Shown here piece by piece: positions 33,616 to 64,000 of a stretch of DNA of 64,000 nt. The notes below the pieces were generated by a model. The model was not told the origin of the DNA. It did no database searches and worked only from the letters and a program-made list of their open reading frames with translations. The stretch is from NCBI GenBank assembly GCA_000708835.1, contig DF236972.1, positions 124,001 to 188,000 of the forward strand, given 5' to 3'. This DNA comes from Klebsormidium nitens (Eukaryota > Plantae > Klebsormidiophyceae). Made by a program: the position numbers and the translations under genes. Each line of letters opens with the position of its first letter. Within the stretch, counting starts at the first letter, position 1.

Positions 33616-34753
33616 CAGGCTAGAAATTATTGAAAGCTGGAACTGTTCATGTTCAGAAACTGCAAACCTTCACTGAGAATCAGAGAAAGCGACCTAGCCA
33701 ACAAAAGGCGAATCTTTAATCTTACTCGGCTACATCGCTTCAATCTTCATACCTTCCTGTCATGCAATATATATTCAAAATTGGCAATTTGAAAATTCAT
33801 CACAGATTGAACATCAAGCACAACATGTGATGGCTATGGTCCAGGGTGTGCAGTGCTTCTGAATCCGATATATATTCCGGCCAGCTTCGATCGTTTGCAG
33901 ATTTCTGGACATGTCATAAATGTGCCGTCACATGCAAAACTACGCGGTTTGGGAAGTATCTATATAGCAACGAGCCTCGGACTCGCTCATGGGTTGTCGC
34001 GCCAGCTAGCGTTGCTGCAGTCGGAGTTTACCAAAGTAGCTAACAGGGTTATACGGTTTGACATGCTGTGCCATAACTTATGATCTGTACGGCACGTGCA
34101 TGATCCGCCCCATGCACACCTTTGATCGATACGCACGGGCTTAATAAAGGTGTCCATCAGCCTGTGAGTCAGGCGGGCGCGGCATGCAGTGACTGGCATG
34201 CATGATTGTTTGAGGCCCTCCGCAAGAAGTGCCGGCGCTGGTACAAATCCGTGTGCATTTCTGTGACCTTTGCACTTGCAGAAATTTGAATAGTACGTTG
34301 GGTACGAGTCAATCGCATATACCTAATCTGGCTGCTAGCTAGCTAGGTGCACCAAATCGAGGGTTGCTTTACTACTAATGTCTAGATGTCAGGCCGGCAG
34401 CTACCTTTTATCATAGTACATATCTAAGAACTTTGCATCTTCGTACAAACGTACCCAATGTCCCACATCTACTAACCGTATCCTTTCTCAAATGTATTGC
34501 TTGTTTTATCGTAGCGCACTCCTATCAACGACCGTATCAACGTACAATGTTACCTTGCAAGCCAAAAATCCTTTGCAGAAGTGATTTCATATGGTGGGAC
34601 CAGATTTATCAGATGCACGTAAGATTCATTCGTCTTGCATGCCACACTAGTTTACAACACCGAGGCCCGCAGGTCTCCGAACTCGGACAGTTCCTCTCGC
34701 AAGCGGACATCCGAATGACATTCCTTTAGCCCCGAACCAGCCTCCCCTGCCCG

Positions 34754-37700
34754 TTAACCGTTAACGCACTTTTGAAGTGTTTGCGGCTGCGTTCGATTCC
34801 GCCTTCTGCTGAAAGAGAACGTTCGCTTCGTTCTCGTCGGCGTAACCGGAGATGGCTCCTCCGCTGGCGCTTCGTCGAGGTACTCGGGGGGCGGGGTGGG
34901 CGGCGGGAAGTCTGCACAGCGTCACGGTCGTTCAACAAATGATTGTGCAGTGTTGAAAAGCACTCATGAAATCCAATCAGTCGCCAGTGATTGTTGGTTT
35001 TTGAGCGTTTCTAGAGAATGTTTGGCTGCTACTGAAGGACTTTTAACAGCACGGATCGTCGCCGGACCGCTGACGACGTTTTGAGAGGAAGCAGATCTCG
35101 GTCTTGGAGAAACGAACACGTGGCAGGTTCTTCAATCTCATCAAAATGGAAAGACGGCATGTCAGCAAGAGATGGTTGTCAATGCAACAAATAGTCGGCA
35201 AACGCATCGGACGCTAGGACTCCCAGAAACAAAGCCCAACCGCTTCAGTCCACCCCTGCGAGTTTGCAGTTGACAGGAAGCTTTCCATGTCGATCATCCA
35301 GGAAGCCTAGGAGTGGGATGACAGCAGAAGGAAGTCACACACGGTCCACCACGTGTATGACGTGCGATGATGTTTTATTCTTCTTCAATCCTTTAGAAGC
35401 CGCGAAGGGTCACTAAACAATTAGCTGCGCAGAGCGAAGACAGTCCCCCAAAGCAACGAGGATCGTTCTTAGGATACTTTTGCGTAGTATTCAGGGTCTT
35501 AGAAATCGGTATCAGGGACTCTTGCAGTCTTTCGGGGAATTGTTAGAGAAGAGATGAGGACAGTGGTCTCAAAAGCTGCTTATGCGAGACGCTTACCGGC
35601 TGGGGGGGTGGGTGCGATCCAGTTGCCGCCCAGTTCGTCCGACCCGGGGGAACCGAAACTGCTCAGAGGGGGCGACACGAAGCTACTGCCGGTGGGGCTG
35701 TCCATCTGCACCGGCGCAGTTTCACGTGGGTTCACTTTTCGTTTACTTCTTATTCTTCCACTTTCAAGTCAAGGCATGCTCCTTCTCGCGAAAGTCGACT
35801 TCCGGCTTTTCTGTACTGACGCGGAGACAAAACAAGCATGCGTTGACTCAAAGCTGGAAGGCTGACTTTGGAGTACGCACACGGCATCCTCCTGAATGCA
35901 TCACACATCCGGCCCTCTGCAGCAAATAACGTCAGGTTTCTTCCGAGCGGAGGTTGTCACCGCACACAAAGCGCCGCCACTAGGAATCGAGCGAAGGGTG
36001 GCCATTCACGCCAAGCACCGGACCCTCACTTGGGCTAACTCCCACCACTCTAGTTGGACTTTCCGGAACAGATTCTGAAACCCAAATCTTGCTGGGCTTC
36101 CGATAACAGGTTCTGAATCCCATCTGTCATGCAAGGAAGTATGGAATTCCGGAGGAAAAAGAAGGAACACGAAATGAACGCCCAAAGTGGCTTACGCACC
36201 CAGGCGCTCTCCGTTGTAGACGGCGGAGGCGTCCATCCAATGTGCCCCTCGTGCTGGACATTGTACGGGTACCCAATGTCCATGTCGTCGAATTTGTCTC
36301 TCCCCCCTGCAGCATAGCTTCTGCGGATCAGATCATAGCCTATCGTCGCGAGGATAAGCGGTGTCTTGAGTGGCCGTGGCTGCGTTTTGTTGGCCTTTTT
36401 GGAAATTGGTCGAACCCACGACTCATGCGAATGCTTTGCGAATCTGTCAGGTGTCGAGTGTGCGGTGCTTCTTATGATGGCGTGATAACGAGCACGGACT
36501 GGATGCCTAAGCAAAAGCAGCGGCGTTCTTAACTCCAGTCAATCATCGCCAGCCGGGCTAGACCCGCCGGCAACATAAGTAGCTGCGTAAAACCAAGGAA
36601 AAGAAGAAAGAAAAACCAAAGAGGATACAAAGGGAGGACATCGGAGGACGTATTATGCAGGACCGTAGGCCTAGAAATGCTTCACGACAACACATCACCT
36701 GCGTATATCCACTAAAGAATGAGAAGATTGAGAACGAGAGAAAGGGGACTGTTGCAAATTTTGAGCGTGATGGGGCGACGACTCACCTGAGAGGATCCTA
36801 TGGAGCTTCGCCTTGACGGTCTTTCCAGGCGAGAAGCCGCACGAGATCGACGCCGGCTCCAAGACTACAAGAAGCGAGCAGAACGCCCAGTGAGAATAGT
36901 CCACAGTTGAGCTTGAGTCTTGCAGTTCGGACGTGGCTAATTGAATGTCATCTCTCTAACAAAACGGCCATACCAGCGGACTTGAATCCAAGGGAGTCCG
37001 TCCTCCTGAAACCCTGCCTTCTCAACTTCGTCTACTGAGCCAATTTCAACCACATGTAGAGCAGTCGAAAATGCCTTTAAATGGCGCGAACTTTAAAGTG
37101 GGCGTCGGGGTATAAAACCCCCGGTTCACGACCAAATTTTGCATCTGGGGTTCCCAGGTTTTGCTGGCTTGACCTAGTGGCAAGCGCGCTCGCTTTGAGG
37201 TCAAGACCTCCGAAAAGAGGTGCAGGTTCGATTCGGGCAACTTTGACATTTTGCTCTGTTTTGCCCCTTCCTTTTTGGACCTTACCGCCGCTGACGTATG
37301 ATGACGTAGCTAAATGGAACCGCGGTACTCTGTGGTACGATACCTGTGGACTGGCCCGGTTCCAGCCTGCCTCCGACGGTCCGCGGGCGCCAAATTTGCC
37401 TGGTCCAGTGTCCGAAACCGGTCCGAAATTTGTCCGAATTCTCTTGACGAAAGGGATCTTTGACCGTTCGATACATTTTAGTCAAATCGACACACCGTTC
37501 GATGAAAATGCAACCGCGGTTGCTACGCCCACGTTAAGCTTCGCAGGAAGGCCTGCCTCATCCGACATGCCGCCCACCCCGAAGACCCAACTTTTGGTCC
37601 GTCAGACCTCTGAATCAGTTGGAAGAAAGCGGGTTCCCAGGGCCGCTATGCACGCTTACATCGGTTACTGCCTGGAGACAGGCCTTGGTTCCTTCCAGGA

Positions 37701-40243
37701 GTTCCGAGCATTGATGGAGTCTTGGCAGCTCGAGGAGTAGCGGGGATGGGGACACTCTTGGTCGCTGCAAGCGAAGCCTAAAAGTCAGCACTCTGTAGGC
37801 GTTCAAAGTCGCTACTTTTTCGCAACGTTCAGCTCTCAATACCACGTGCGACTCTCTCAGCATTTTGCCCGTTCAGGGGCTCGCACATCCATGAGCCGAA
37901 ACGCGCAGAGTTCGCTTTCGACCTCGCACTTCGCCGGAACAGCAGTCCGGTTTCGACTTCTCAAGTCGGGGGCACTTTCCAGTTCCGTCAACTGCAAAGC
38001 ACTTGTTTTTTGTTCAGGTCACGTACCATGGTTATGATGGATTTTCAATGTTCACAGTGCCTCCAGTTGACTGCCCCGTAATCCTACATTCAGAGGTCTA
38101 GGTAAGTGACTCAGTTGCTAGAAAACCTTGCTCCCCAGTTCCCTGAATTCGCTCGTCTTGAAAAAGCTGCCACGGAAACTTGCTTACCGGATTCCTTTGG
38201 AAGCGAGATGCTTCTCTGCTGCACGGCCCTGCTGCCGCCCGATGCCAGAACAGACGCCGGTGACGTCCCGGGGGAGGGAGTGCTCGAGGGGGACACGTGG
38301 GAGAACGTGGGGCTCGTACCCGCCAACACCTCCTGCAAAGAACGGGGAAACCCGGGCCGCTCAAAAACTTGGTGTCAAAAGTTGCAGACCGGAAGCAGTC
38401 TCTGAAACTCCTGTTCCCAAATGGTCCCTTTTAACACATGGTTTGTTCTATGCATGGCTGTCGATTATGGGGTCCTACTTTCTGGTCCGGTGTAATCCAT
38501 GATTCTGCCCTAGGTCGAAATCTTTGCGGGCAGAAAAGCTCATCTCGACACGGCTGCGACTCATTGAGGATCGACTATTGTTGGATTCCCCTTGCCGCTC
38601 TTGCTGACCGTTGAACATGCCTCTTTATGTTCAACGGCCAGGCTGCTTAAAGAGATTCAGCAGACTCGACCATTTTTGGGGATCCCCTCACCGAAGGTCG
38701 AAGCGGCCCGCTCTTGCACCTCCGGTTGTGGAGCACCGGCGGCGGGGGGCTCATTTCGGGCGCGCCTAGTTCCCCTGCCATGAACAACGGCCTTGCGGTG
38801 CGGGATGAAGGAAGAGAGGACTTCTGGAAGTCTGGCGCTCCAGCAGGAACGTCTTCCAAGTTTTTTGCTGCTTCTAATGTTACAAAGTCGAGGATCTCGC
38901 TCGCCGCCACGGCGTCGCTGAAACCAAGCCCCCGGTAGGTGCCATTCTGCGGAGAAAGAACGGGAAAACTTTGCAAAAGAGCTTGGTTTGCTTTTGTATG
39001 TTTCTTTTTCAAAGATGGTTCCTACGATTGTCCATCTTTCCAATATCCGAGGGTTCCCAGTCCGTGGTCTTAAGGCCACCAAATAGCTTTTGATGGATCC
39101 TTGAACCAACGATGAGACATACAAAATGACGAAACTGATATCTTGGGCCTGTCAGGCTAACAGAATGGGCGGTTTTTATTTCCACAAACCAGCTGACACA
39201 ACTAAAGGGAGACAAGTCCAAGAAGCATTTGAGTTCTAGGCATGTGTGTGACTATAGATCGCAAAGACCCCGAGCCACTTCCAGTTGTTCCCTCCCTTGT
39301 CTAATTCGACAACGGGCCCTTCTTAAAAGGTCAGGCCAACGAGTTCGGAGTTGGCTGTTCGCACCTCTTGTTTGATGACGTGGAAGCGTTCTGACAGCTT
39401 GAAATATGCCGATGCTGGCCGAGTTGTCTGGAACAAGACCTGGCCATCCTGCAGATAGAAGAAAAGAATGAGGCTCAACCTTTCTGCATCTTGGACCTGA
39501 TCTGGGGGCTTCGGAAAACAATGCTCTTCGGTTAAGCCGGAATCGGGCCAGCATACTAGCCGGTCCCATCGCTTAAAGGGCAAGCTTCTTGTGTTACTTG
39601 TCAATCACACGTTTTCCTTTTGACGAAGAACTGCTGATACAAAGGAAGGCCCCAAAGTAACCCGCCTCCTTGTTCAAAGGCTGCAATTGATTCTCAGAGT
39701 ATCCAACTGTTGTAAGACGCTTTGACCTCAGAAGGATGATGCTTGCAGTAAAGCCATCAGTAAAGCTTTCAATCAAGTTAAGAAGGATCAATGTAGAACG
39801 ACTTCTATGACTCACTCCTCTGTAAGGAAAGATCCAGCGTGAAGCTTGGCAATCTGAGATGTGAGATCTTTACTCAGCTTCTGCTTAACCAGCACATTCG
39901 AGTCAAAAAGTTGTTCAACCGCCTTCAAAAAGTTGCTCTACCGCCTTCAGAAAGTTGCATTACCTGAAGTTACGCCGCTCCCTTACACAAACCCTGTCGA
40001 ACGACAATTCACAGGGAACAAAGTGTTCCTAGTAAACGTTCCAGACGCATTTCAGGTACTGACCAGGAGGTCATGGAGTTGGCACACAAGAAGCGCGCCT
40101 GCCGCATCTTGGATTTGCAGCTCCCCAATGGCTGGGCAAAGTCGCCAGGGACCTGCGACGATCGCCTCAAAAAGGGTGACGGGACACCGGGCCTGCAACA
40201 TTGAGCAACAGGTCTGTAGAACTTCAGTTTCTACAAGCGGCAT
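34754..40243 (-). CDS. EVH1/WH1-like domain + CRIB motif + Pro-rich protein (WASP-like architecture, no VCA), about 370 aa
   Basis: Phase-consistent exons (minus): 40064-40243, 39365-39448, 38692-38946, 38188-38332, 36787-36864, 36200-36306, 35597-35705, 34754-34911. Spliced product contains VTLFEAIVAGPWRLCPAIGELQIQD...QLHDLLDGQVLFQ...YFKLSERFHVIKQENGTYRGLGFSDAVAASEILDFV (WH1/EVH1 pattern), basic KTVKAKLHRILS, CRIB DIGYPYNVQHEGHIGW, then PTPPA and PPPTPPPEY. Start codon tentative; an upstream exon near 40900-41040 is possible. Confidence 0.72.
37163..37242 (+). pseudogene. Degenerate tRNA-derived sequence (tRNA-Ala-like; possible SINE head) in an intron
   Basis: A-box-like TGACCTAGTGG, then GCGCTCGCTTTG (as recalled in plant tRNA-Ala(UGC)), then GAGG..GGTTCGATTC B-box. 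Acceptor and T stems do not pair, so it is not a functional tRNA. Confidence 0.35.
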
Positions 40244-42647
40244 CACTATACCCGCTTTGAAGCTTTCAGTCTCGGAGAGCGTTCAACGGCTACAAACCAG
40301 CTAGATCGAGTCTGTTCTATGAAGGCGACACATCAATGTAAGTGAAGCTTGCTTTCACACGTCTCCTGAAGTCACTGGTCTCCTGAGGTCACATAATGTC
40401 CCCCATGATGTTACAACGTTGCAAGCACATCTGTGGACTTAATGCACAGGAGGTTGACTGTTTTGCTCCAATGTGGCCCACGAGGCTGGTCAAATCATGC
40501 GGGTGAAAATCAACAAGGGGCTTACCACTCTTGTTGACCTCATACTGATCATCTCAGGAGGACAGGTCGCCCATTGCATAGACCATCAGAAGCCCATTTG
40601 TGCTCCAAAGTGTGCAATGTTCAGATGAGGGGCACTCCCTGCTTTCATCGCAGGGGTGCATCATGAAACCCTAACCGGAGGCTGTAAATTACAAAGCATG
40701 CTGATTTCCGATTTGAGCTTGTTCAAAAGGGAGATTTCATGTCTGGACGGTCACATTTAACTTCCGGCCCGCTCAATCAAAGTCACTAAAATGCAATCGC
40801 AGTCGCTGCGTTCAACCAATTCGTCAACCGATTGCAGTGTGCAAAGCTTGCTCTCTTCGCACAACGTCTTCCAGCTCAGGCATTCCAGCCTTTCTCATAG
40901 AAACGGCCGCCTCGCACAAAGTTGCTGGAGATCATCGCAGACAATCTGCTCAGGACTGCGTCCCATGAAATAAGCTCCCTCGTGCTTTGCTGAGCTTGCT
41001 GAGCTGCCCTGGCAACTGCAGTTTTGACATCTGGGACCATCTGCACCAAATGCGGCCCACGAGTTCCTAATCGACGGCTGGTGTTGGCCAAGCTGTCATG
41101 TCACACTCACTCCATGCGGACGCCCCTGTTATGCGGACGCCCCTGTCATGTCCCACACAGTGAGTCACGACGGTTGAACTTAGAGGCGGCGGCCGCCCGG
41201 GCCCAGCGGGCCGCCGCCGTTGGACATTCGTGATTCAATGAAGCCTAGCTATCATAGCCCTACTCCGTGGCAGATTTTGGAAATTGTCATCGAGTCGGAC
41301 TCAAACCCTGAAACCCGGTCCGGGCTCCAAACGCGTCGGACCGGGCGGCGCGGCGCCATATGGCAAACACATCGCGGCCGCCTCCTCAAATGTGACGCGC
41401 GACGTGTGAGCGTGGCCCATAAATACCGCCCTCATCCTACTAGTATCTTGAACCTTGATAGGATACGAGCTAGCTGCAAAGCACCCATCAAGACTTGCAA
41501 AGATTGCATGCGAGCAGCAAAAGCTCCGCGCCGTTTCTTGGTGCTTAATATGAATTCGTACGTCAGTGGACGGATGGATGGGCGCCTCAGCTTCATGAAG
41601 TAAAGAAGTTGAGAGTCGACTATGGGGACCAAGCAATGTGATCGCGTACTTGAGAACGTGGAATCCACCAGGACTTCACCTGGTTTTGCAAGAGGCGTGT
41701 TGTCAACATTCAGACTAGCATCGGATTCATCAAGCAGATTACATGCACGTCGCAAGTCCGCGGTTTGAATGTTTGGATAAGTTAATAAGTCTGAATCCGC
41801 AGCCGTGTGGAAGGCCTTGAACAGAATGGACCTGCTCGGTCAAGATCATGGCGAGGTCTGGAAAGGCCCGTCCAAGCATATTTCAGCATTGCTGCACGTC
41901 GTTTAGTACATGACAGGTGGCCGACAGGGTATTGTGGTATCTTCAACTTGAGACCGGACTTTGCACTAAGCGGGAATAGCAAGCCTCCAAAACCTAGCGG
42001 AGCATACTCCAAGTTTTTCGAGCACTCTCCAGTACAAGCTTTTGCCGCAGCTGCAATTCAAGTTGCAGCGGTGAGGGTCTCCCTTGAAGGCGCAAGTACC
42101 CGAAATGCTCGACAAAGGAAGAAGGTCAGCCCTTTTCCAAATGCGCGTCATTCAAGTTCTGTGAAAGCTGATAGTCGCAATCAGAGCAGATGAAGAGCAA
42201 CTGCACGCGGAGCGTGACAAGTAAAGTGCGACAGCGCACAATCCGAAAAAGACAAGCCGTCTAACCCTCGTTGTTCACTTGCGCGCGTATACATTGGCAT
42301 ATGATTTTGACCAAGGGCCAAACGACATTCATAGTCGCTTCAAGTGAGGCAGCTTTCCTTCAAACAGAACATGAACACGCCAAAAAGCAATAAGATGGAC
42401 AGACCATCCAGCCGCGTACTGACGTAGCCGACTTTCCTGGCTGGTGTGGCAGTCGATATGCGGCTGCTTGATTGACGCTTAGATGGCATTTCATTAGACA
42501 CCTCTCAAGCAGCAGGACTCGACGAAGTCGTATCAACTGGCTATAGCAATTGTTACGTGAACCACGGGACTTGGTTTTCAATTTTGTCCCTCTTTCGATT
42601 GTTCTTCATCGAAGCGATCTACTTGTTCGCTTAACAGAGAAAGAGCC

Positions 42648-55522: not shown

Positions 55523-58500
55523 ATGGAGGGCAACAAGAGAGGAGAGACTTTTCGCCCGGTGTCCGCCCGAGCTGGGAGCAGGAACAATTCACGACAAGGC
55601 CCAAAACAAACCTCAGAGACAGCTCCTATAGTTGGTAGGAGAATCACCAATCCGACGGTGAGCTGGAACTTGGGCGCCCTAACCGCCCGGGTAACCCAGC
55701 CGGTCAGCGAGTCGGCTGGAGAGCAGCAAGCGGTGTCGGACCAGAGGAGAGAGTCTGCAGGCCTTTTGGGGGCTGAACGAACAGAAGAGGTCCCCTTGGA
55801 ATTAGGGGCGGAGCGAATCTCTGCGCTGGTGGAGGGCAACCGAGAGGCCTTGTATCAGCAGAGGCTGCTCGAGCTGAGGCAGAAGGCGCTGGACATCATG
55901 AACGGAAACAGGGCCTCAGAGTTGCCACCTAGTACAGCCCAAAGGAGTGAGCCAGAACTGGGGAACGGACAGCACATTGTGGCACCACCTGAAGCGAATG
56001 GGATGCGCATTCCGCGCGCAGAGGCTGTGCTGACAACTGCAAAAGTACAGGAGACGGCGGGTAAGAAGCCGGTCCAGAAGTCACCCCCCCAGAAGAAGCA
56101 AATAAAGGCGAATGTCCGGCCGCTCAGCTCGCTACTGAAGGAGAGCCAGGACCGGCTCGCAAACATTCACCGGCTCTTAGACGCGGCCACGGAGGAGTCT
56201 CTCTTTGCGCCGCAACGGCCGCAAACGGAGTCTGCAGAGAAGTGGGATGCGGGAGAAGAAGCGGCTCAAAGCAGGGGGCCTGGAACTCCAGGTAAGTAGC
56301 TGCAAATTCGCTGCCACAAAGGATGGATTTGAACATGCCTGGTAGGTAGTAGCTCGACATTAGCGGCCATAATATTGGGAGTAGAAAGTAGGACTGTTTT
56401 CAAGGGGAAGAACGTAGACGTGACTGTATGATGTCACGCTTCAAACATTGCGCCCAATGGACATCGATTTGAGTAGAGAAGACTTGTGAGGAGACAAGAT
56501 CCTGAAGTGTTGACTTAAGGCTGGCTGTGATGCCCTTTCACAGAGAGTAGCTTAACGATATCATTTCTTCAGGGCAGTTCGCACGTGTCCGTTTTTCGTG
56601 ATCTCCTTGACCCTTGTGCTGGTACGACTGAAGTCAGCCAATCGCTCATGCTTCAATCTGGTTGCAGCACACTGAAGCAGGTAAAAAGCCAGCCCTTCCA
56701 TATCCGTTTGTTATCAAGTACGTAATGGCAGCGCTGAAGGAGCCCATTGACTTGTCATCGCTGATTTCTGACAGCCTCATGGTCCTTGTCACTATTTTCG
56801 CTCGCTTACTCACACCCACTGTTCTCTCTTCGCAGCAGGTGGTTCCATCCCCTTTGTAATCCAACCTGCCGGCCCGCCTCCTGACTATGTGAGCCCTGAG
56901 CTCGTGCACATTATCCAAGCAAACGCCCCAGATCATCTGGACCTAGTTGACCCAACTACCACCCGGAAGGCGAAGCGAGACTCAAATGGCACGTATGAAA
57001 ACGGGGCCCACAGAACGGCTCCAAAATCGCAGCAGTTTGCCCAGGCTCGTCAAGCGAACAGTCCCGTCAGAGTTGGCGCGGTATTGTCAAATGATGGAAA
57101 GCGGAGGAGAGCAGTAGATGCGGCCGGGGATCAGGAACTACGGTTTGTAAGTGGACGGTCCGAACGGGCAGCGAAAGTCGAGGCCCTGCTCGTGAAGATC
57201 CAGGAGCGCAACTCGAAGATTGCAGTGCAGAAGGCTGCGACCGAGGAAGGACGCGCTGCAAATCAGGGCCTTTTGAGGCAATATGGGGGATCCCTTCAGA
57301 ACGCGGGTGCGGATCAGAACCGAGTGGGTAACCGCTCACCGGACAGAGGGCCGGGGGGCTATGGTGACATAAGAGGTGACGAGGGGATGAGCGGTGGGCG
57401 GGCGAGCGTGGTGGGGCGCTCGAGGAGCGCGCCGCATCAGCGGCCGGTCAGTCGCGGGGCGACACCTCGGAAAGGAAGGAGAAGCTCGGACGATTCTGAG
57501 CTGGGCGGTCGGATAGCTACGGACGGCGCCGCTGCTGTGGCGGACGAGAGGGCAGCGGGTCAGAAGCAAACAAAACCAAGGGTCTCTACGGAGGAAGCAT
57601 CGGGTTTGCCAGGAGAAAGGAAAGCGGCATGGGCGGAGAAAGCAAGCGGCAAGCTAAAACCAAAGCGGAAGTTTGCGGGGACCCGGGCTAGACCAGCCGG
57701 TGTAAATATCCCCGACATCCTCAACCTCCAGGGGCCTGGAACCGTTTCTGGGGGCGTGGAAGTTGGCGAAAAGGCGTCCGGAGCTGTGCTCAGCACAGGG
57801 GTCAGTACGTCTGTTAGACTGACCGAGTTCGGACAGTCCGTAACCAGCCCAACGCTGTCCGGATGGTCGCAGGACGAGGTGGGGGTCGAGCATACGTGGC
57901 TGTACAGTGCGAACAGCCACGGGCTTGCTGTGAATAAGGGGGATGCTCACGGCATCGCGGAACAAGGCCTTGTCGGAGCAGAGGCGGGGCCGGCAGGAAG
58001 GAGTGTTTTTAATAACGCTGGGCCAAAACAGGGCCTGGCGAGTCTGGCGCAAGCTGCAACTGAAGGCCCTGTTCTTGCTGGGGTCGGCGAGCGGCCTGCA
58101 TTTTACCCTGGGGAGTTAAGGAGAGGCGGGGTAGAACAGGGCCTTGAGGAAGGAGGCCAGCTGGCAAGCCCGCTCGTGCAAACGTTCGCTCTCGGAAGGG
58201 GCCTACCGACACAGGTTCCGAACGAGTTGGACAATTCGAATTGGGGGGGTGCAGAAAGTGCGAAAACCGCCCCTCTGGTTGGTGTGCTGGTGAACGGGGG
58301 GATCCCCTCTGTTCTCGGTCCGGCGAATGCGGGGACAACCGTCGGCATCGCACTCGCCGGTATCCAGGAGAAAGCCCGAGAACAGGTCCGGTCGGCGCTC
58401 GCGAAACGGCCGCAAAGCGCGCCGAGTGTGAAACGGCCCAGTCAAAATTCCAAACCCCAGTCCGTGCCCCAGCCGCACCCCATCTTCGGGGCTCGTTCTC

Positions 58501-61500
58501 ACCCCTTCCTTCGAGCGCCCCCCTCCAAGGGCCCGTTCACACCCCCTTCGCAGCTCAGTGTGAACAGGCCCCCGGGCGAGCGAAGGAAGAGCACCGGGGG
58601 GGCTGATTTGGCGGGAGCAAAGCGACCCCTATCTGCGCAGAGCCGGTTGGGAGGGGAGGAGGCGCAAGAGTTGGGAACGCGAAAGAGTCGGCTGAGTGGA
58701 GAACGTTTGGACGAGGTAGGTGGAGATTCACCATCCCCGATTGCAAAACTGGGCTTATTGGGAAAGATCGTGGTTTCAGATTGAGGTTCTGGAATTGCTT
58801 ATTGCGAGGACTCTGGATTCTGTGTCCTTCAAGCTGCTGGTTTCAGGCGTCTTCAGGCCTCGATGTCAGACCTTGCCTTTGAGCGGAGTGTTCTACTCAT
58901 TATCGCTTGTACTCTCGAACTTGAATCTGTCGGATCCTCCTTGAGCCTTTCGACGGCTTGAAGTGAATCCAACTTATCAAATGCGGACGCTTAGAACCTG
59001 CCTCATACGTCGTCGTGGCAGATTAAGCAGATGAGATGTTGTGAATCTTGCAAACGAAGCGACGCCGGTTGTCATGCGCAGGTGCGTGCCTTCATGATTG
59101 CCCAGCAAAAGGCTCGCAAAACGCAGGAAGCGAGGGAACGCGAGATGCGGCGTGCGGCCGAGGAGGAGCGGTCGAAACAGCTCAAGGCCCTCGAGCAACA
59201 CTATCCGAAAGGTCCGCTGCCTTACTTTCCACTTTTGTCAGAGCTTACACGAGACCCTGTTTGTTCAGGTTGGTGGACTGTGGGTCCCGTCAGGCAAATG
59301 TCTGTTTTACATTCTTCGCGTGCAGGCTTCCTTGTCAGATTTCGACTTGTTTTAACCGCAGGTAGCAACAGGGTTACTGGCCTGCCAGCTTTTGGTCGCT
59401 TCCTTGCCAAATGCTCTTATTACCAGTTTATTTATGCTATTATTACCACGTTATCTGCGTTGTCATCATGCAGCAGCTCTCTCTTCTCGGCCGTTCGATG
59501 GGACATTAGGCCCACTGTAGCCTGAGCGCTTCTCCTCAGACTGCTCTTGGGATGGCGTATAACCCTCAGATACTGCCATTTGTATCTGTTCCTTCTCCTT
59601 TGCTTTCTCACTTTCTGATCCTTCCCTTGCTCCTTTTCCGTCTTCCTTGTGATCTGGTTTTCACGTTCAGAAGAAGGCCACGTGTGTAAGCCCTGTCCCC
59701 CTCCATTTGCAGTCTCTCCAAAGCCCTCCCCGCCTAAGACCCGCCCCGACTGGAACACCTCCGTCACGCCCCCCGAGCACACCCCTCCTCCACAGCAAAA
59801 CGACCACCCCGAGACGGACAGCGTGCTAGCTGAGCAAGGGACCGTTCTTGGAGAAGACCCGGAAAACATCGCTACCAGAATTTCCGCAAAGACCTCTGTT
59901 CCACGCCCCGGAATCGCGCCCCACAATTCGGTCCTCAACGCAGCCAGCAAGCCGGGGTTGAGCATTCTTCCAGGTTCTGCGCCGGGTTTCGCTGCGGGGT
60001 TCACGGGGGTTTCGACAGTGGTTAGGCGAGCAGGGACGAGGGTTCAGCCGTTGCCTAGCAAGACGGCTTTGAAAGTATCAACCGCAGAATCAGTGGAGGC
60101 GACTCTCAAGTCGTGGGTAGGGGGCCACGCGGTAAAGCGGCCGCCGAGCGAAGCCACTAAACCCCTCATAAGCCCTGCGAGGAGCCCGGTAACCCGAGCC
60201 AAACCTCCGGCAAACCCTTCTGGGGTCCAGGCTGTGAGAAGCCCTGTCCGAGACTCTCGACCCGTCCGAAACGCTGACCGCGTTCCAAATTCTGAGACTG
60301 TCCGGAAACCTCAGCTCGTTCGAACGTCCGAGACCGTCCAAAGCCCCGAAAACGTACGATTTCTCGAGTCCTCACAACACCTCGAACCCGTCCGAAAGTT
60401 GGCTGATCTCAGTGGGGCTCCTGTACACCTTCTGAGTTTTGCCACTTTGGCCAACCTAGAGACGCCGATGACGTCAGCTTGGTCCGAGGGACTGGCGCTG
60501 ATATCAGCAGGGGTCGGGGAGGGAGCGGAGCTGGCGGGTGACGACATTGTGGAGCCTGAGAAGTCTGTTGGGGGCATCGGACTGGGCGCAAATATTGGGA
60601 CGCCTGAGAGACTTGCCCCAAGAGCAGAGTCGCTGGGCGCAGTTCCTGAAACCGTGCTGCAAACAGGCTGGTTAGATCCAGGGTTTGCGGCTAACCCATC
60701 AGCAAGCGCAGAAGAGATTGGGGACCGAAGAAGGCCATCTTTGACCGTAGACATCACGGGCGCGGTTGCGGACGCGGTCGGGGTGGCTCTGTCCGGAAGG
60801 GCGACCATGTCGGGGCGGAAGAGAGGGGAGGCAGTCGAGGAGGAGCGGCCGCGGTCGCCGATTCCGGACGCGAAGGCGCGGCTGGCGATGATGAAAGAGT
60901 ACGGACGTCAGCAGGTGCGTCGGAGGGCACCCCTCAGAAGACAATTGTTTCTCGGACTGTTGCTGAGGTGACTCCAAAATGAGTTTGACTCCACGCGAAA
61001 GGGGTCGGTGATAGGTGCCTCAGATGAGTCCTATCGGAGTTGGTTCAACAAGCTTTGATCTACCGCTTTTGATTTCAGGCCTTCTCTGCTGATTGTGATG
61101 CCTGCGCAGCTTGAGTTGTAGTATGCGCATTGGAAGTCTTGGAACTCTAAAACCTTGAAAACTAAAACGAAGATTCTCGTTGCAGCATGGCCTTAGGATC
61201 CGAGCTTTTGCAGCCTGGCCTTGTTTCTAAACGCATTAGTTTTTTACTTGAGTTTCACGGGCTCATTGGCGGGCAGAAGCCCCCTCAACTCCCAGGATGC
61301 AGATTGAAATGCTGTTCGTATGCTCGGAATCTGAACAAGAATGCTCGGAATCTAAACTACCGTACCTGTATTTGATTTCGGCGAAAAATAAATAATTATT
61401 TGGCCGGCTGAAATTTTCAGAAATTATCTTGGGGCGATAATGGTTCGATAATGGTTGTTTTAGCAGGTAACGTCAAGCCTGCTGAAAGGAATAAAAGTTT

Positions 61501-64000
61501 CATAAATAACTATTTTGCGTCGAAGGTGCCGAAATCAAATACAGGTACGGTCGAATGGTCCCCGAAAACGACATTGCTTTTGTTTTTCCTCGCAGCGGCA
61601 AAGGCGGGCTGCCCTTGACGCGGTTCGACGGAAAAAGGAGCACGAGCGCAAGTTGGCCGCCCAAGCGCTGCGGCGCAAGCAGGCCGAGCGTGCGCGCCAG
61701 GCAGAAGCTGCACGGAAGCCCCGAAGCAGCGGAACGCGGCCGGAATCCGGCGTCCGGAGGAGCTCGAGGCCGTCCGTTAGCAGCTTCATCGCGGCCAAAC
61801 GGAAGAAGGAAGCGTCCGAACGAAGCGTGCGGTCGTCCGAACGAGCGCTTAAGGCGTCCGAAGGAGCGCCCATAGCGTCGGACTCAGCTCATGTAATGTC
61901 CGACGATTTCGTGATGGAAGGCGGCGGTGGCACGCACACAGCAATCAATTGGACTGGCTATGGGATGGAGCGGATGAGTGTGAAAAGCCCGCCCCTGCGA
62001 GGGCAGCGTCCGGCAAACTGGCCGGACGGTCGCCGGAGCGTCCGAACCCAAGCGCCGGTCCCAGCACATCCGGAAGTGTCCGAAGAAGGGCCGTTCAGCG
62101 ACGGGAACCGGGGCGGGACGCGCCACGTCATCACCGAAGGGATCCCAGTCCACGCTGACGTCAGCGAAGCCAATCCGGCGGCGCCACAGGGCCGGCCGGG
62201 GACGGCGCCGAGCCGGATTGCGGGCACGTTCGTTCGGACGCTTGGGGCCGTCCGGACGGAGCGGTCCGAACGGCAGGGAGAGTTGCTGAGCCCATGGAGC
62301 GTGCCGAGCATCGAGGAGAGCCTGCTGTTCGATGGGACCTATGAGGAGGTGCCACGTGGCAGGAGCGGGAGGGCGCTCAGCGCTACCAAGATGCTGCAGT
62401 CGGACGGGCCCGTGGTGATGACGTGGCAGCGTCCGGAGCCGCGGCAGGGCGGATGGGTCGGGGGGTCGGAGTCCGAGATTGCAGAATCGGACGTCCGAAC
62501 GGGGGTGGAAAAGTTTCTGGCGGCGAAGCCACGGGTCAAGCGAAACGGAAAGCCGGTTAGGGGCCTGGTTAAGAAGGTTAGCGTGCCAAAAGAGGCGAGC
62601 TTTGCGTCCGACTTCGATGCGGACACGGAGAGCCTGACCCCGGACTCGGTCGTTGATGCTGCGTCCGAACCGGACCGGTTAAGGCGGCGGTTAGCGCGCA
62701 AACGGCGGGGCGCAAAATGGCCCCACGGGGAGGGTTGGGAGCGCGAGGTTTTGGCAAAGGCAGAAACTGACCGGCGGTTGGATGTGCTGAAGGAAATGGC
62801 GGCTCGGATCGCGAAGCGGCTGGAGGCGCTCGCGTTTTCCGGGGGGGAGGGTTCGCGGGCGGAACTAGCCCCCGAGATCGAGGCGATTGTTGGCCAGGCG
62901 GAGAAGCTGCTGAGGGGGGTCGATTCTAGGGGGAGGAATGGGGATGACGACCCCCCCGGCAAGGCGAAGAGGCCAAAGAAGAAGCGGAAGGGGCACAAGC
63001 GGGGGGTTTCGGAGTCGAGAGCTTTGGGAGGTCTAGGCAGCCCGCTTGCAAGCAAGCGGCTGAGTGCGAGTCCGGAAAAGACGGGTGCTCGTTCCAGGCG
63101 GAAATCAATTGAGGCAGCCGCCGAGAAGGGGCCGCGAACGGGTGCCAGATCCAGAGACGCGGCGCCAGCAGTTGCTGACGTCACGGTGACGTCACTGGCG
63201 GCGGCTTCGGAGCGGGCGTTCTCCGACGACGCCTCCCTCTTCAGTCCGGTGGGCGGGTCAGAGAATGCGCTCTCGGTGGGTGTGAACAGCGACAGGGCAC
63301 TCAGGCATAGCCCCAACGTGCAGACTGCCAGAGGCTTTTCACACCCGTTCCCTGAAATTGCTCGAACTCAAGAGGCAATGGTCACCGAGCAAGCTTCGGA
63401 GCAGGAGGGGTCAGAGAGCTCCGCTGCTGACGACTACGTGACGTCAGACGGTGATGAGGGTGATGACGTCATCGCGGACCTCGACGCCGAAATCCAACAA
63501 CTGCTCCAGCAGCGGAGGCTGGCTCCAGCGGCGCGCGTTGGTACTGATTCTGAATCGCCGACTGGGGCGGCCGAGCCTGCGGTGTTTAGAAACGGTGCCG
63601 GTAAGCCGTCAGCAGAGCAACGGTGGGCTTCGCTGGTTGGGACCGGAGAAAGAAGCGCGTCGGAAGGCTCGGAAGAGGAAATGGAAGAGGAGAGCTCGGA
63701 AGGGGAAGAGGGCGGCAGAGTGGCGCCGCTCGCTGATGTCAGCAAAGGCCCACGTGGGCTCGTACAGCCGACTGACGTCAGCAGGGGCGCCCAGGGGCTC
63801 CTTTCGGACCTGTACTCGGACTCTGAGGAAGATGATAAGTCGGATACAGGGCCGTCAAAATCGGCTGACGGGCTGACGTCACACACTCGCGGCGCTAGCG
63901 TCGGACAGATTCGTGTGTCGAAGAAGCCCGCTGGACAGGTGCCGGACGCTGACGTCTCTCGAGGGTCCGCTGACGTGAGCACGGAGCAGAAAAAGGTTAC
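55523..64000 (+). CDS. Very large low-complexity / coiled-coil protein, putatively CEP350/CCDC187-like; continues beyond the right edge
   Basis: Exons 55523-56291, 56836(or 56839)-58715, 59082-59211, 59713-60914, 61596->64000 splice in phase. The last exon appears open for about 800 codons to the window end and is missing from the ORF track because it has no stop. Junction reads RLDE|VRAFMIAQQKARKTQEAREREMRRAAEEERSKQLKAL; a second charged coil reads KARLAMMKEYGRQQ|RQRRAALDAVRRKKEHERKLAAQ. Confidence 0.75.

Follow-up and report, generated by a model that had tools for sequence, protein, structure and literature searches.

The minus strand of a 64,000-nucleotide stretch of the Klebsormidium nitens genome (contig DF236972.1, positions 124,001 to 188,000; hereafter the window) carries an expressed and annotated gene, KFL_000230250, which probably encodes a 395-amino-acid effector of ROP GTPases with a WASP-like layout, belonging to a family that extends from charophytes to gymnosperms. 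From the N- to the C-terminus, the protein is composed of a domain of the EVH1 (PH-like) type (amino acids 1-108), a long disordered linker rich in serine and proline, a basic patch and a CRIB motif, followed by a conserved post-CRIB segment, a [FL]PPxPPxE[FY] motif and a basic tail. A previous reading of the locus, made from the sequence only, had described a hidden gene for a WASP-like protein without the VCA region (WH2, central and acidic) in a genome of the green lineage, and proposed it as a relic linking WASP with the RIC effectors of plants. The lineage was correctly recognized, K. nitens being a charophyte (streptophyte) alga. The gene is not hidden, as it is present in the databases (GenBank GAQ79045.1, UniProt A0A1Y1HKD6) under the names "hypothetical protein" or "CRIB domain-containing protein".

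Gene structure and transcript evidence

The exons were rebuilt from the sequence and then compared with contigs assembled from public RNA, which identify the locus as a spliced, intron-rich and expressed gene. Of the words sampled from the window, 18% or more were present in each of twenty RNA runs, and the contigs of four of these runs, which come from four studies under two organism labels, were aligned to positions 34500-40450; these Logan contigs omit rare variants. All four runs gave the same eight exact junctions, reading CT..AC on the plus strand and hence GT..AG on the strand of the gene: 34911/35597, 35705/36200, 36306/36787, 36864/37660, 37764/38188, 38332/38692, 38946/39365 and 39448/40064. 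Contig depth was about 120-360 at the junctions versus 0-37 within introns. The in-phase GT-AG splicing proposed from the sequence was thus borne out on RNA, with eight introns exactly confirmed in the four runs, but not the count of eight small exons, since nine lie inside 34754-40243 and the full model has ten coding exons.

The tenth exon lies upstream. In every one of the four runs the contigs depart from the genome at 40193 and extend for 255 nucleotides, the first 30 letters of which equal 40527-40556; the additional exon ends at 40526 (donor GT) and is joined to the acceptor AG at 40194-40193. The ATG at 40243, formerly taken as the start codon, is intronic according to the same contigs, which splice from the exon ending at 40526 into 40193/40192, and therefore the first 17 residues of the earlier model (MPLVETEV...) are absent from the protein. 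The acceptor formerly assigned to the CRIB exon, at 36320, also had to be abandoned, because with it the frame is lost and a stop is met; the real acceptor is 36306, in agreement with the RNA contigs. The resulting ten-exon coding sequence has 1188 nucleotides from the ATG at 40543, and its translation of 395 amino acids, instead of the approximately 370 first estimated, is identical at every residue to the database protein P0001 (A0A1Y1HKD6), which was located by a HMMER scan with exon 4 (100% match over residues 78-162). The parts of the gene, in coordinates of the window, are the following:

Exon 1, coding part, 40526-40543, minus strand: MRSTRV, with the annotated start ATG at 40543-40541; supported by the loose contig end at 40193 and by identity with P0001.
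Exon 2 (amino acids 7-49), 40064-40192, minus strand: EVH1-like strands beta1 to beta3, with the invariant Trp22; acceptor AG at 40194-40193 and junction 39448/40064.
Exon 3 (amino acids 50-77), 39365-39448, minus strand: DGQVLF...RFHVIKQE, EVH1-like core; RNA junctions and conservation.
Exon 4 (amino acids 78-162), 38692-38946, minus strand: last EVH1-like strands and C-terminal helix (to amino acid 108, position 38854), then the start of the disordered linker rich in serine and proline.
Exon 5 (amino acids 163-210), 38188-38332, minus strand: disordered linker; RNA junctions and a predicted local distance difference test score (pLDDT) below 50.
Exon 6 (amino acids 211-245), 37660-37764, minus strand: disordered linker; RNA junctions.
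Exon 7 (amino acids 246-271), 36787-36864, minus strand: end of the linker and basic pre-CRIB patch (KTVKAKLHRILS); RNA junctions.
Exon 8 (amino acids 272-307), 36200-36306, minus strand: CRIB IGYPYNVQHEGHIGW at 36277-36233 (amino acids 282-296); Pfam PBD match and RNA junctions.
Exon 9 (amino acids 308-343), 35597-35705, minus strand: conserved post-CRIB segment (WMD...PLSSFG.P...NWI); RNA junctions and invariant columns.
Exon 10, coding part, 34754-34911, minus strand: proline motif FPPPTPPPEYLD at 34909-34874 (amino acids 345-356), basic tail at 34873-34757 and stop TAA at 34756-34754; junction 34911/35597.
3' untranslated region, 34500-34753, minus strand: contiguous with exon 10 and continuing about 230-295 nucleotides beyond 34500; RNA contigs.

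Protein layout and distribution of the family

The only Pfam family matched by the K. nitens protein is PBD (PF00786), and no catalytic domain is present. The CRIB exon alone scores 23 bits against this profile (E 9.7e-5, cut-off 21.3), and a precomputed PF00786 match exists in nearly all full-length orthologues, which upholds the CRIB recognized from the sequence. Since the match is limited to positions 1-18 of the 59 in the profile, the WAID part is not seen; moreover, the full-length AlphaFold2 model shows no helices beyond the CRIB, where pLDDT is below 50. The basic patch reported ahead of the CRIB is indeed found (KTVKAKLHRILSGGRDK), and so is the PPPTPPP motif after it, in the form FPPPTPPPEY and 63 amino acids from the CRIB start, where it is conserved in the family. 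The proline region of the K. nitens protein consists of this single short motif, with no long tract.

The absence of a VCA also held. The C-terminus is made up of the proline motif and the basic tail, with the stop codon in the last exon, and the RNA contigs cover 34500-34911 at full depth and without a junction, through the stop codon into the 3' untranslated region. In the contigs of the four runs no downstream coding exon is joined after the stop, although a minor isoform is conceivable as rare variants are omitted from them, and none of the relatives retrieved by the homology searches carries a VCA. Because the protein has neither a VCA nor the WAID helices, it cannot activate Arp2/3 as WASP does, nor be autoinhibited in the manner of WASP.

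The protein itself, a family profile and a profile of the N-terminal domain only served as queries in word-indexed searches for relatives, all restricted by length and shared words. The 27 relatives found have approximately 300-366 amino acids, and those with species names come from the lycophyte Diphasiastrum complanatum, the ferns Ceratopteris richardii and Adiantum nelumboides, and the gymnosperms Ginkgo, Taxus chinensis and Araucaria cunninghamii, the remainder being transcriptome or metatranscriptome proteins; two divergent members, P0024 and P0025, are from a Logan run and a JGI metatranscriptome. The family is conserved from a charophyte alga to gymnosperms. All intact members have their parts in identical order: the N-terminal domain (core RFFVIRQEN..FRGFGF), a variable linker, the basic stretch, the CRIB, the post-CRIB segment (W-M-D-E...P-L-x-D-F-G-Q-P...W-I-H-D-A) and the proline motif, which can be written x-[LFMV]-P-P-x-P-P-x-[EQH]-[FY], is separated from the CRIB start by about 70 residues and precedes a tail rich in Lys, Arg and Ser. 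In the N-terminal domain, identity between K. nitens and the land plants is 40-49%, with 20 invariant columns. No angiosperm and no named bryophyte member was found, a blank that says little in searches limited by length and words; equally uninformative, in the same searches, is the lack of proteins with the N-terminal domain and no CRIB other than P0026 and P0034. These two should not be counted as N-domain-only proteins, since they are broken gene models: P0026 (Ginkgo Gb_01193) has an unrelated N-terminal extension of 58 amino acids and lost its CRIB by a frame change, and P0034 has an intron-like insertion within the N-terminal domain. Two AlphaFold DB clusters, I1H1S1 (139 amino acids) and A0A446IPJ7 (112 amino acids), which we take from their accession numbers to be grass proteins, show 21% identity to the N-terminal domain and a target template modelling (TM) score of 0.64-0.67; they could be free-standing EVH1-like proteins of angiosperms.

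The proline motif is present in every CRIB-bearing member except P0033, within an otherwise variable tail. In the full-length AlphaFold2 model of the K. nitens protein, pLDDT falls below 50 after residue 116 except at residues 341-360 (82-86), which contain the FPPPTPPPEYLD motif (amino acids 345-356), and the structural alignment to 7lxf, a fusion of the ENAH EVH1 domain with a PCARE peptide, spans model residues 1 to 355, with five more residues aligned than to other ENAH entries. This reach is as expected if the motif occupies the position of the EVH1 peptide, and thus AlphaFold2 appears to dock the proline motif on the EVH1-like domain. By a manual alignment, the counterparts of the aromatic triad Tyr16/Trp23/Phe77 of Mena are presumably the near-invariant Phe/Tyr14 and the invariant residues Trp22 and Phe71. 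The [FL]PPxPPxE[FY] motif resembles the LPPPEPY core of WIP, the ligand of WH1, a point in favour of descent from WASP.

The N-terminal domain and its possible kinship with known proteins

The N-terminal domain had been assigned to WH1/EVH1 from sequence patterns, and the assignment stands for the fold but not for the family, as Pfam WH1 remains below threshold and ties with the NECAP PHear domain. With single exons, with residues 1-125 of P0001 or with the whole protein, no match to Pfam WH1 was obtained in K. nitens even at E 10. Among 13 family members, WH1 (PF00568) reached 14.6-17.5 bits in three (cut-off 22.4), in alignments that run end to end (positions 8-110 of 111), and NECAP PHear (DUF1681, PF07933) reached 12-16 bits in seven (cut-off 29.2, best E 0.01), most of these matches being local (profile positions 80-121 of 158). 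Searches of the PDB sequences with two alignments and one member returned only NECAP1/2, at E 0.3-1.4, in addition to chance RRM matches on the GFGF motif.

The evidence for the fold comes from predicted structures. In the full-length AlphaFold2 model, built from 19 sequences, the domain has seven strands and ends in a helix, at a pLDDT of 87-94; this model replaced one of the domain alone, with pLDDT 72, which had given weak, unranked PH-like matches and spurious ones to SsgA/SsgB. In Foldseek searches against the PDB, the top match was the EVH1 domain of Mena/ENAH (E 4.9e-6, target TM 0.71-0.74, root-mean-square deviation of about 3.1-3.4 A), followed by PP4R3 EVH1, Dcp1, Spred1, RanBD, NECAP, Homer and N-WASP (E 2.6e-4). 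The predicted domain is a seven-stranded PH-like sandwich with a C-terminal helix in about 110 amino acids, as in the EVH1/WH1 superfamily, and at the level of the model the EVH1/WH1-type fold is confirmed. Structural scores fail to separate Dcp1, Ena/VASP, Spred, RanBD, NECAP and N-WASP. The ESM Atlas model of the protein has TM 0.76-0.82 to clusters of WH1, VASP, WASP, NECAP and PP4R3, and the AlphaFold DB cluster search returned WH1, NECAP and PP4R3 entries mixed together, along with long meaningless alignments over disordered parts. The closest language-model neighbours of the K. nitens protein are WH1 clusters (0.89, 180 of 256 features shared), and those of a gymnosperm member are WAS/WH1 (0.86) and then NECAP (0.82); such neighbours are leads and not proof. 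Only these neighbours and the domain order point to the WH1 of WASP as a candidate affiliation of the domain.

One explanation for the layout is descent from an ancestral eukaryotic WASP (WH1-basic-CRIB-polyPro-VCA), with WAID and VCA lost in the streptophyte stem and the short RICs of angiosperm type as later truncations. We hold this to be possible, if on the doubtful side. The domain order is that of the N-terminal half of WASP, the subthreshold WH1 matches span their profile globally, and WH1/WAS clusters rank first among the language-model neighbours of both members. There is also a precedent: Kollmar et al. (2012) accepted VCA-less short proteins of fish and basidiomycetes, with WH1 and CRIB, as WASP derivatives (PMC3298513); basidiomycete clusters with WH1 and PBD, of about 260-280 amino acids, occur among the Atlas neighbours. 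However, the literature regards WASP as lost from plants, in which, as Kollmar et al. state, it has never been found (PMC3298513), the WH1 profile matches only three of 13 members, under its cut-off, and not K. nitens, and the structure comparison places N-WASP after Dcp1, Ena/VASP, CARM1-N, RanBD, Spred and NECAP. Moreover, the PBD match stops at the first 18 positions, without WAID or post-CRIB helices, and the homology searches made found no VCA-carrying intermediate. The proposal of a relic WASP linking to RICs thus keeps the domain order and the language-model neighbours on its side, but neither structure scores nor profile searches single out a family.

The layout could instead have arisen by convergence, if a generic PH- or EVH1-like domain and a CRIB were joined independently in the streptophyte ancestor; the likeness to WASP would then be coincidental and the domain may bind another partner, nuclear or lipid. 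In accordance with this, no sequence link to any single EVH1 subfamily was found, CRIB motifs are short and paired with many domains, as in the CRIB-RopGAPs of plants (PMC10625565), and possible EVH1-like donors of plants (PP4R3, RanBD, Dcp1, NECAP) appear among the neighbours. We nevertheless find it rather unlikely, because the entire order of fold, basic patch, CRIB and proline motif matches WASP, which goes beyond two parts, and the proline motif is conserved as strongly as the N-terminal domain. That the domain is a PHear of the NECAP type, which would read FxDxF/WxxF endocytic motifs or AP-2 and link ROP to clathrin traffic, seems improbable, despite DUF1681 being the commonest subthreshold Pfam match. 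NECAP1/2 are the sole PH-type matches of the family profile in PDB sequences (E 0.3-0.4, over RFFVIRQENGSFRGFGF), they have the highest identity in structural alignments (19-24%), and NECAP models score in AlphaFold DB as WH1 models do. On the other hand, the DUF1681 matches are mostly local while those of WH1 run end to end, the 108 residues of the domain are as in EVH1 and the aligned NECAP PHear chains have 122-138, the top Foldseek matches and target TM favour Ena/VASP EVH1, and the conserved motif that would be its partner within the protein is rich in proline and predicted to dock.

The reading that we favour, a ROP effector of WASP-like layout, also has points that weigh against it. No sequence method, in the Pfam or PDB-sequence profile searches, puts the N-terminal domain in a named family above threshold, and when the whole K. 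nitens protein is scanned its CRIB scores 18.3 bits, below the PF00786 cut-off of 21.3. The rise in pLDDT from 72 to approximately 90 parallels a deeper alignment (13 versus 19 sequences) and is not a clean test. The predicted docking of the proline motif is drawn from pLDDT values and one alignment range, the putative binding to ROP is presumed from the properties of the family, any localisation and phenotype are likewise putative, and orthology with the moss protein PpRIC is an assumption.

Compared with WASP and N-WASP, the K. nitens protein has the N-terminal EVH1-type fold, the basic patch, a CRIB with a core like H-x-x-H-[IV]-G-W-D and the proline motif in common; it would also be an effector of a Rho-family GTPase, and a closed state regulated by the GTPase is plausible. 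It differs in lacking the VCA and the WAID helices and in a WH1 profile score below threshold. In addition, the EVH1-like domain is predicted here to contact the proline motif of its own chain, whereas the intramolecular contact of WASP joins the GBD and the C-helix, and the WH1 ligand of WASP is supplied in trans by WIP. As the VCA, which defines the family, is absent, and WAID too, the protein is not a member of the WASP family. The EVH1 domains of Ena/VASP, Homer and Spred share 13-16% identity with it and give no profile match, and the protein has no EVH2, coiled coil or Sprouty domain. NECAP PHear has the best, though non-significant, sequence similarity (RFFVIRQENGSFRGFGF versus RYFVIRIQDG...FIGIGF) and similar structural scores, but the match is local only, the aligned NECAP chains are longer and NECAP contains no CRIB. 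NECAP also reads a different class of ligand.

With plant RICs (ROP-interactive CRIB-motif proteins) there are likenesses too. As a streptophyte CRIB protein with no catalytic domain, the K. nitens protein falls under the operational definition of a RIC. It shares with RICs the CRIB core, which reads IGYPTDVKHVAHIGWDG in the land-plant members, and a conserved post-CRIB segment with W-M-D/E, and streptophyte CRIB clusters make up 46 of the 100 Atlas neighbours found for the C-terminal half (best 0.81), which is no more than a lead. The folded domain of 108 amino acids and the conserved cis proline motif set the K. nitens family apart from RICs, which were described in a 2024 review as "generally small and unstructured" (PMC11194304). 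PpRIC, a ROP effector of the moss Physcomitrium, is labelled "ancestral" and, relative to the 11 RICs of Arabidopsis, "structurally very different" (PMC12630451). The latter label would fit the longer layout of K. nitens. The family is probably the ancestral type of RIC, and PpRIC may belong to it. Work by Ntefidou and colleagues from 2023 is reported to show PpRIC acting partly in the nucleus. A literature search combining WH1/EVH1 with RIC, PpRIC, MpRIC and Klebsormidium found no open-access paper tying RICs to these domains; the novelty of recognizing an EVH1-type domain in a RIC-type protein is uncertain.

Transcript variants and proposed mode of action

The 5' leader in exon 1 has at least about 255 nucleotides. 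If the leader is colinear with the genome at 40544-40781, it contains several upstream ATGs, with short upstream open reading frames at about 40740 and 40699 and an out-of-frame one of 36 codons at 40664-40554. An in-frame ATG at 40579 would lengthen the protein by 12 residues (MQWATCPPEMIS), in which W..PP is faintly like the M-K-T-L-G-W-P-P start of land-plant relatives. Control of KFL_000230250 by upstream reading frames or an alternative start codon is possible.

Intron 6 (36865-37659) is represented in each of the four runs by one contig of 855 nucleotides, which spans the intron and 30 nucleotides of each flanking exon. Its depth is 10-37, versus 3-10 for contigs of other introns and about 120-270 for its spliced junction, which suggests that an isoform retaining this intron is present, its share varying between runs from very roughly 4% to 25% of the spliced form. 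In such transcripts the reading frame would be lost ahead of the CRIB. Within the same intron, at about 37160-37241 on the plus strand, there is a T-arm-like GGTTCGATTC together with a tRNA-like 5' half (GCTGGCTTGACCTAGTGGC...); the 23-mer occurs once in the window. A tRNA or Rfam family was considered for this stretch and discarded, as ARAGORN and Rfam gave no match there; it may be a decayed element derived from a tRNA. At the far end of the window, at 56001-64000, G+C rises from approximately 0.51 to 0.57-0.61, with positive GC skew (0.06-0.15).

As to the way in which the effector would work, the family properties suggest that its CRIB binds GTP-bound ROP. The EVH1-like domain, on the predicted model, would read proline motifs, beginning with the one near the C-terminus of the protein itself, and this contact would keep the protein closed (or joined head-to-tail) and place the CRIB in the loop between the two. 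ROP-GTP, competing proline-rich partners or both may then open the protein and turn it into an adaptor, and the basic tail would aid its targeting to the membrane or the nucleus. By analogy, the protein would be comparable in its action to a RIC scaffold or to the N-terminal, regulatory half of WASP. We tentatively put forward, as an idea that is less probable than its opposite, that RIC effectors are what remains of WASP: the ancestral RIC would be the WH1-basic-CRIB-proline half, from which WAID and VCA were lost and into which a WIP-like ligand was taken up as a clamp in cis. Klebsormidium, lycophytes, ferns and gymnosperms would still have this form, and the short, unstructured RICs of angiosperms would be further truncations.

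In reviews, RICs are small, unstructured and specific to plants, and WASP is a protein that plants have lost. A family that joins a folded EVH1-type module and a conserved candidate self-ligand to a CRIB offers a structural handle on the possible switching of early ROP effectors. Trp22, Phe71, the histidines of the CRIB and the proline motif are candidate residues and motifs for mutation, and the family opens a testable route from an ancestral eukaryotic Rho-WASP module to the ROP-RIC signalling of plants. Even if the N-terminal domain should prove unrelated to WH1, the family would still clearly exemplify a regulatory layout like that of WASP which has no output in actin nucleation.

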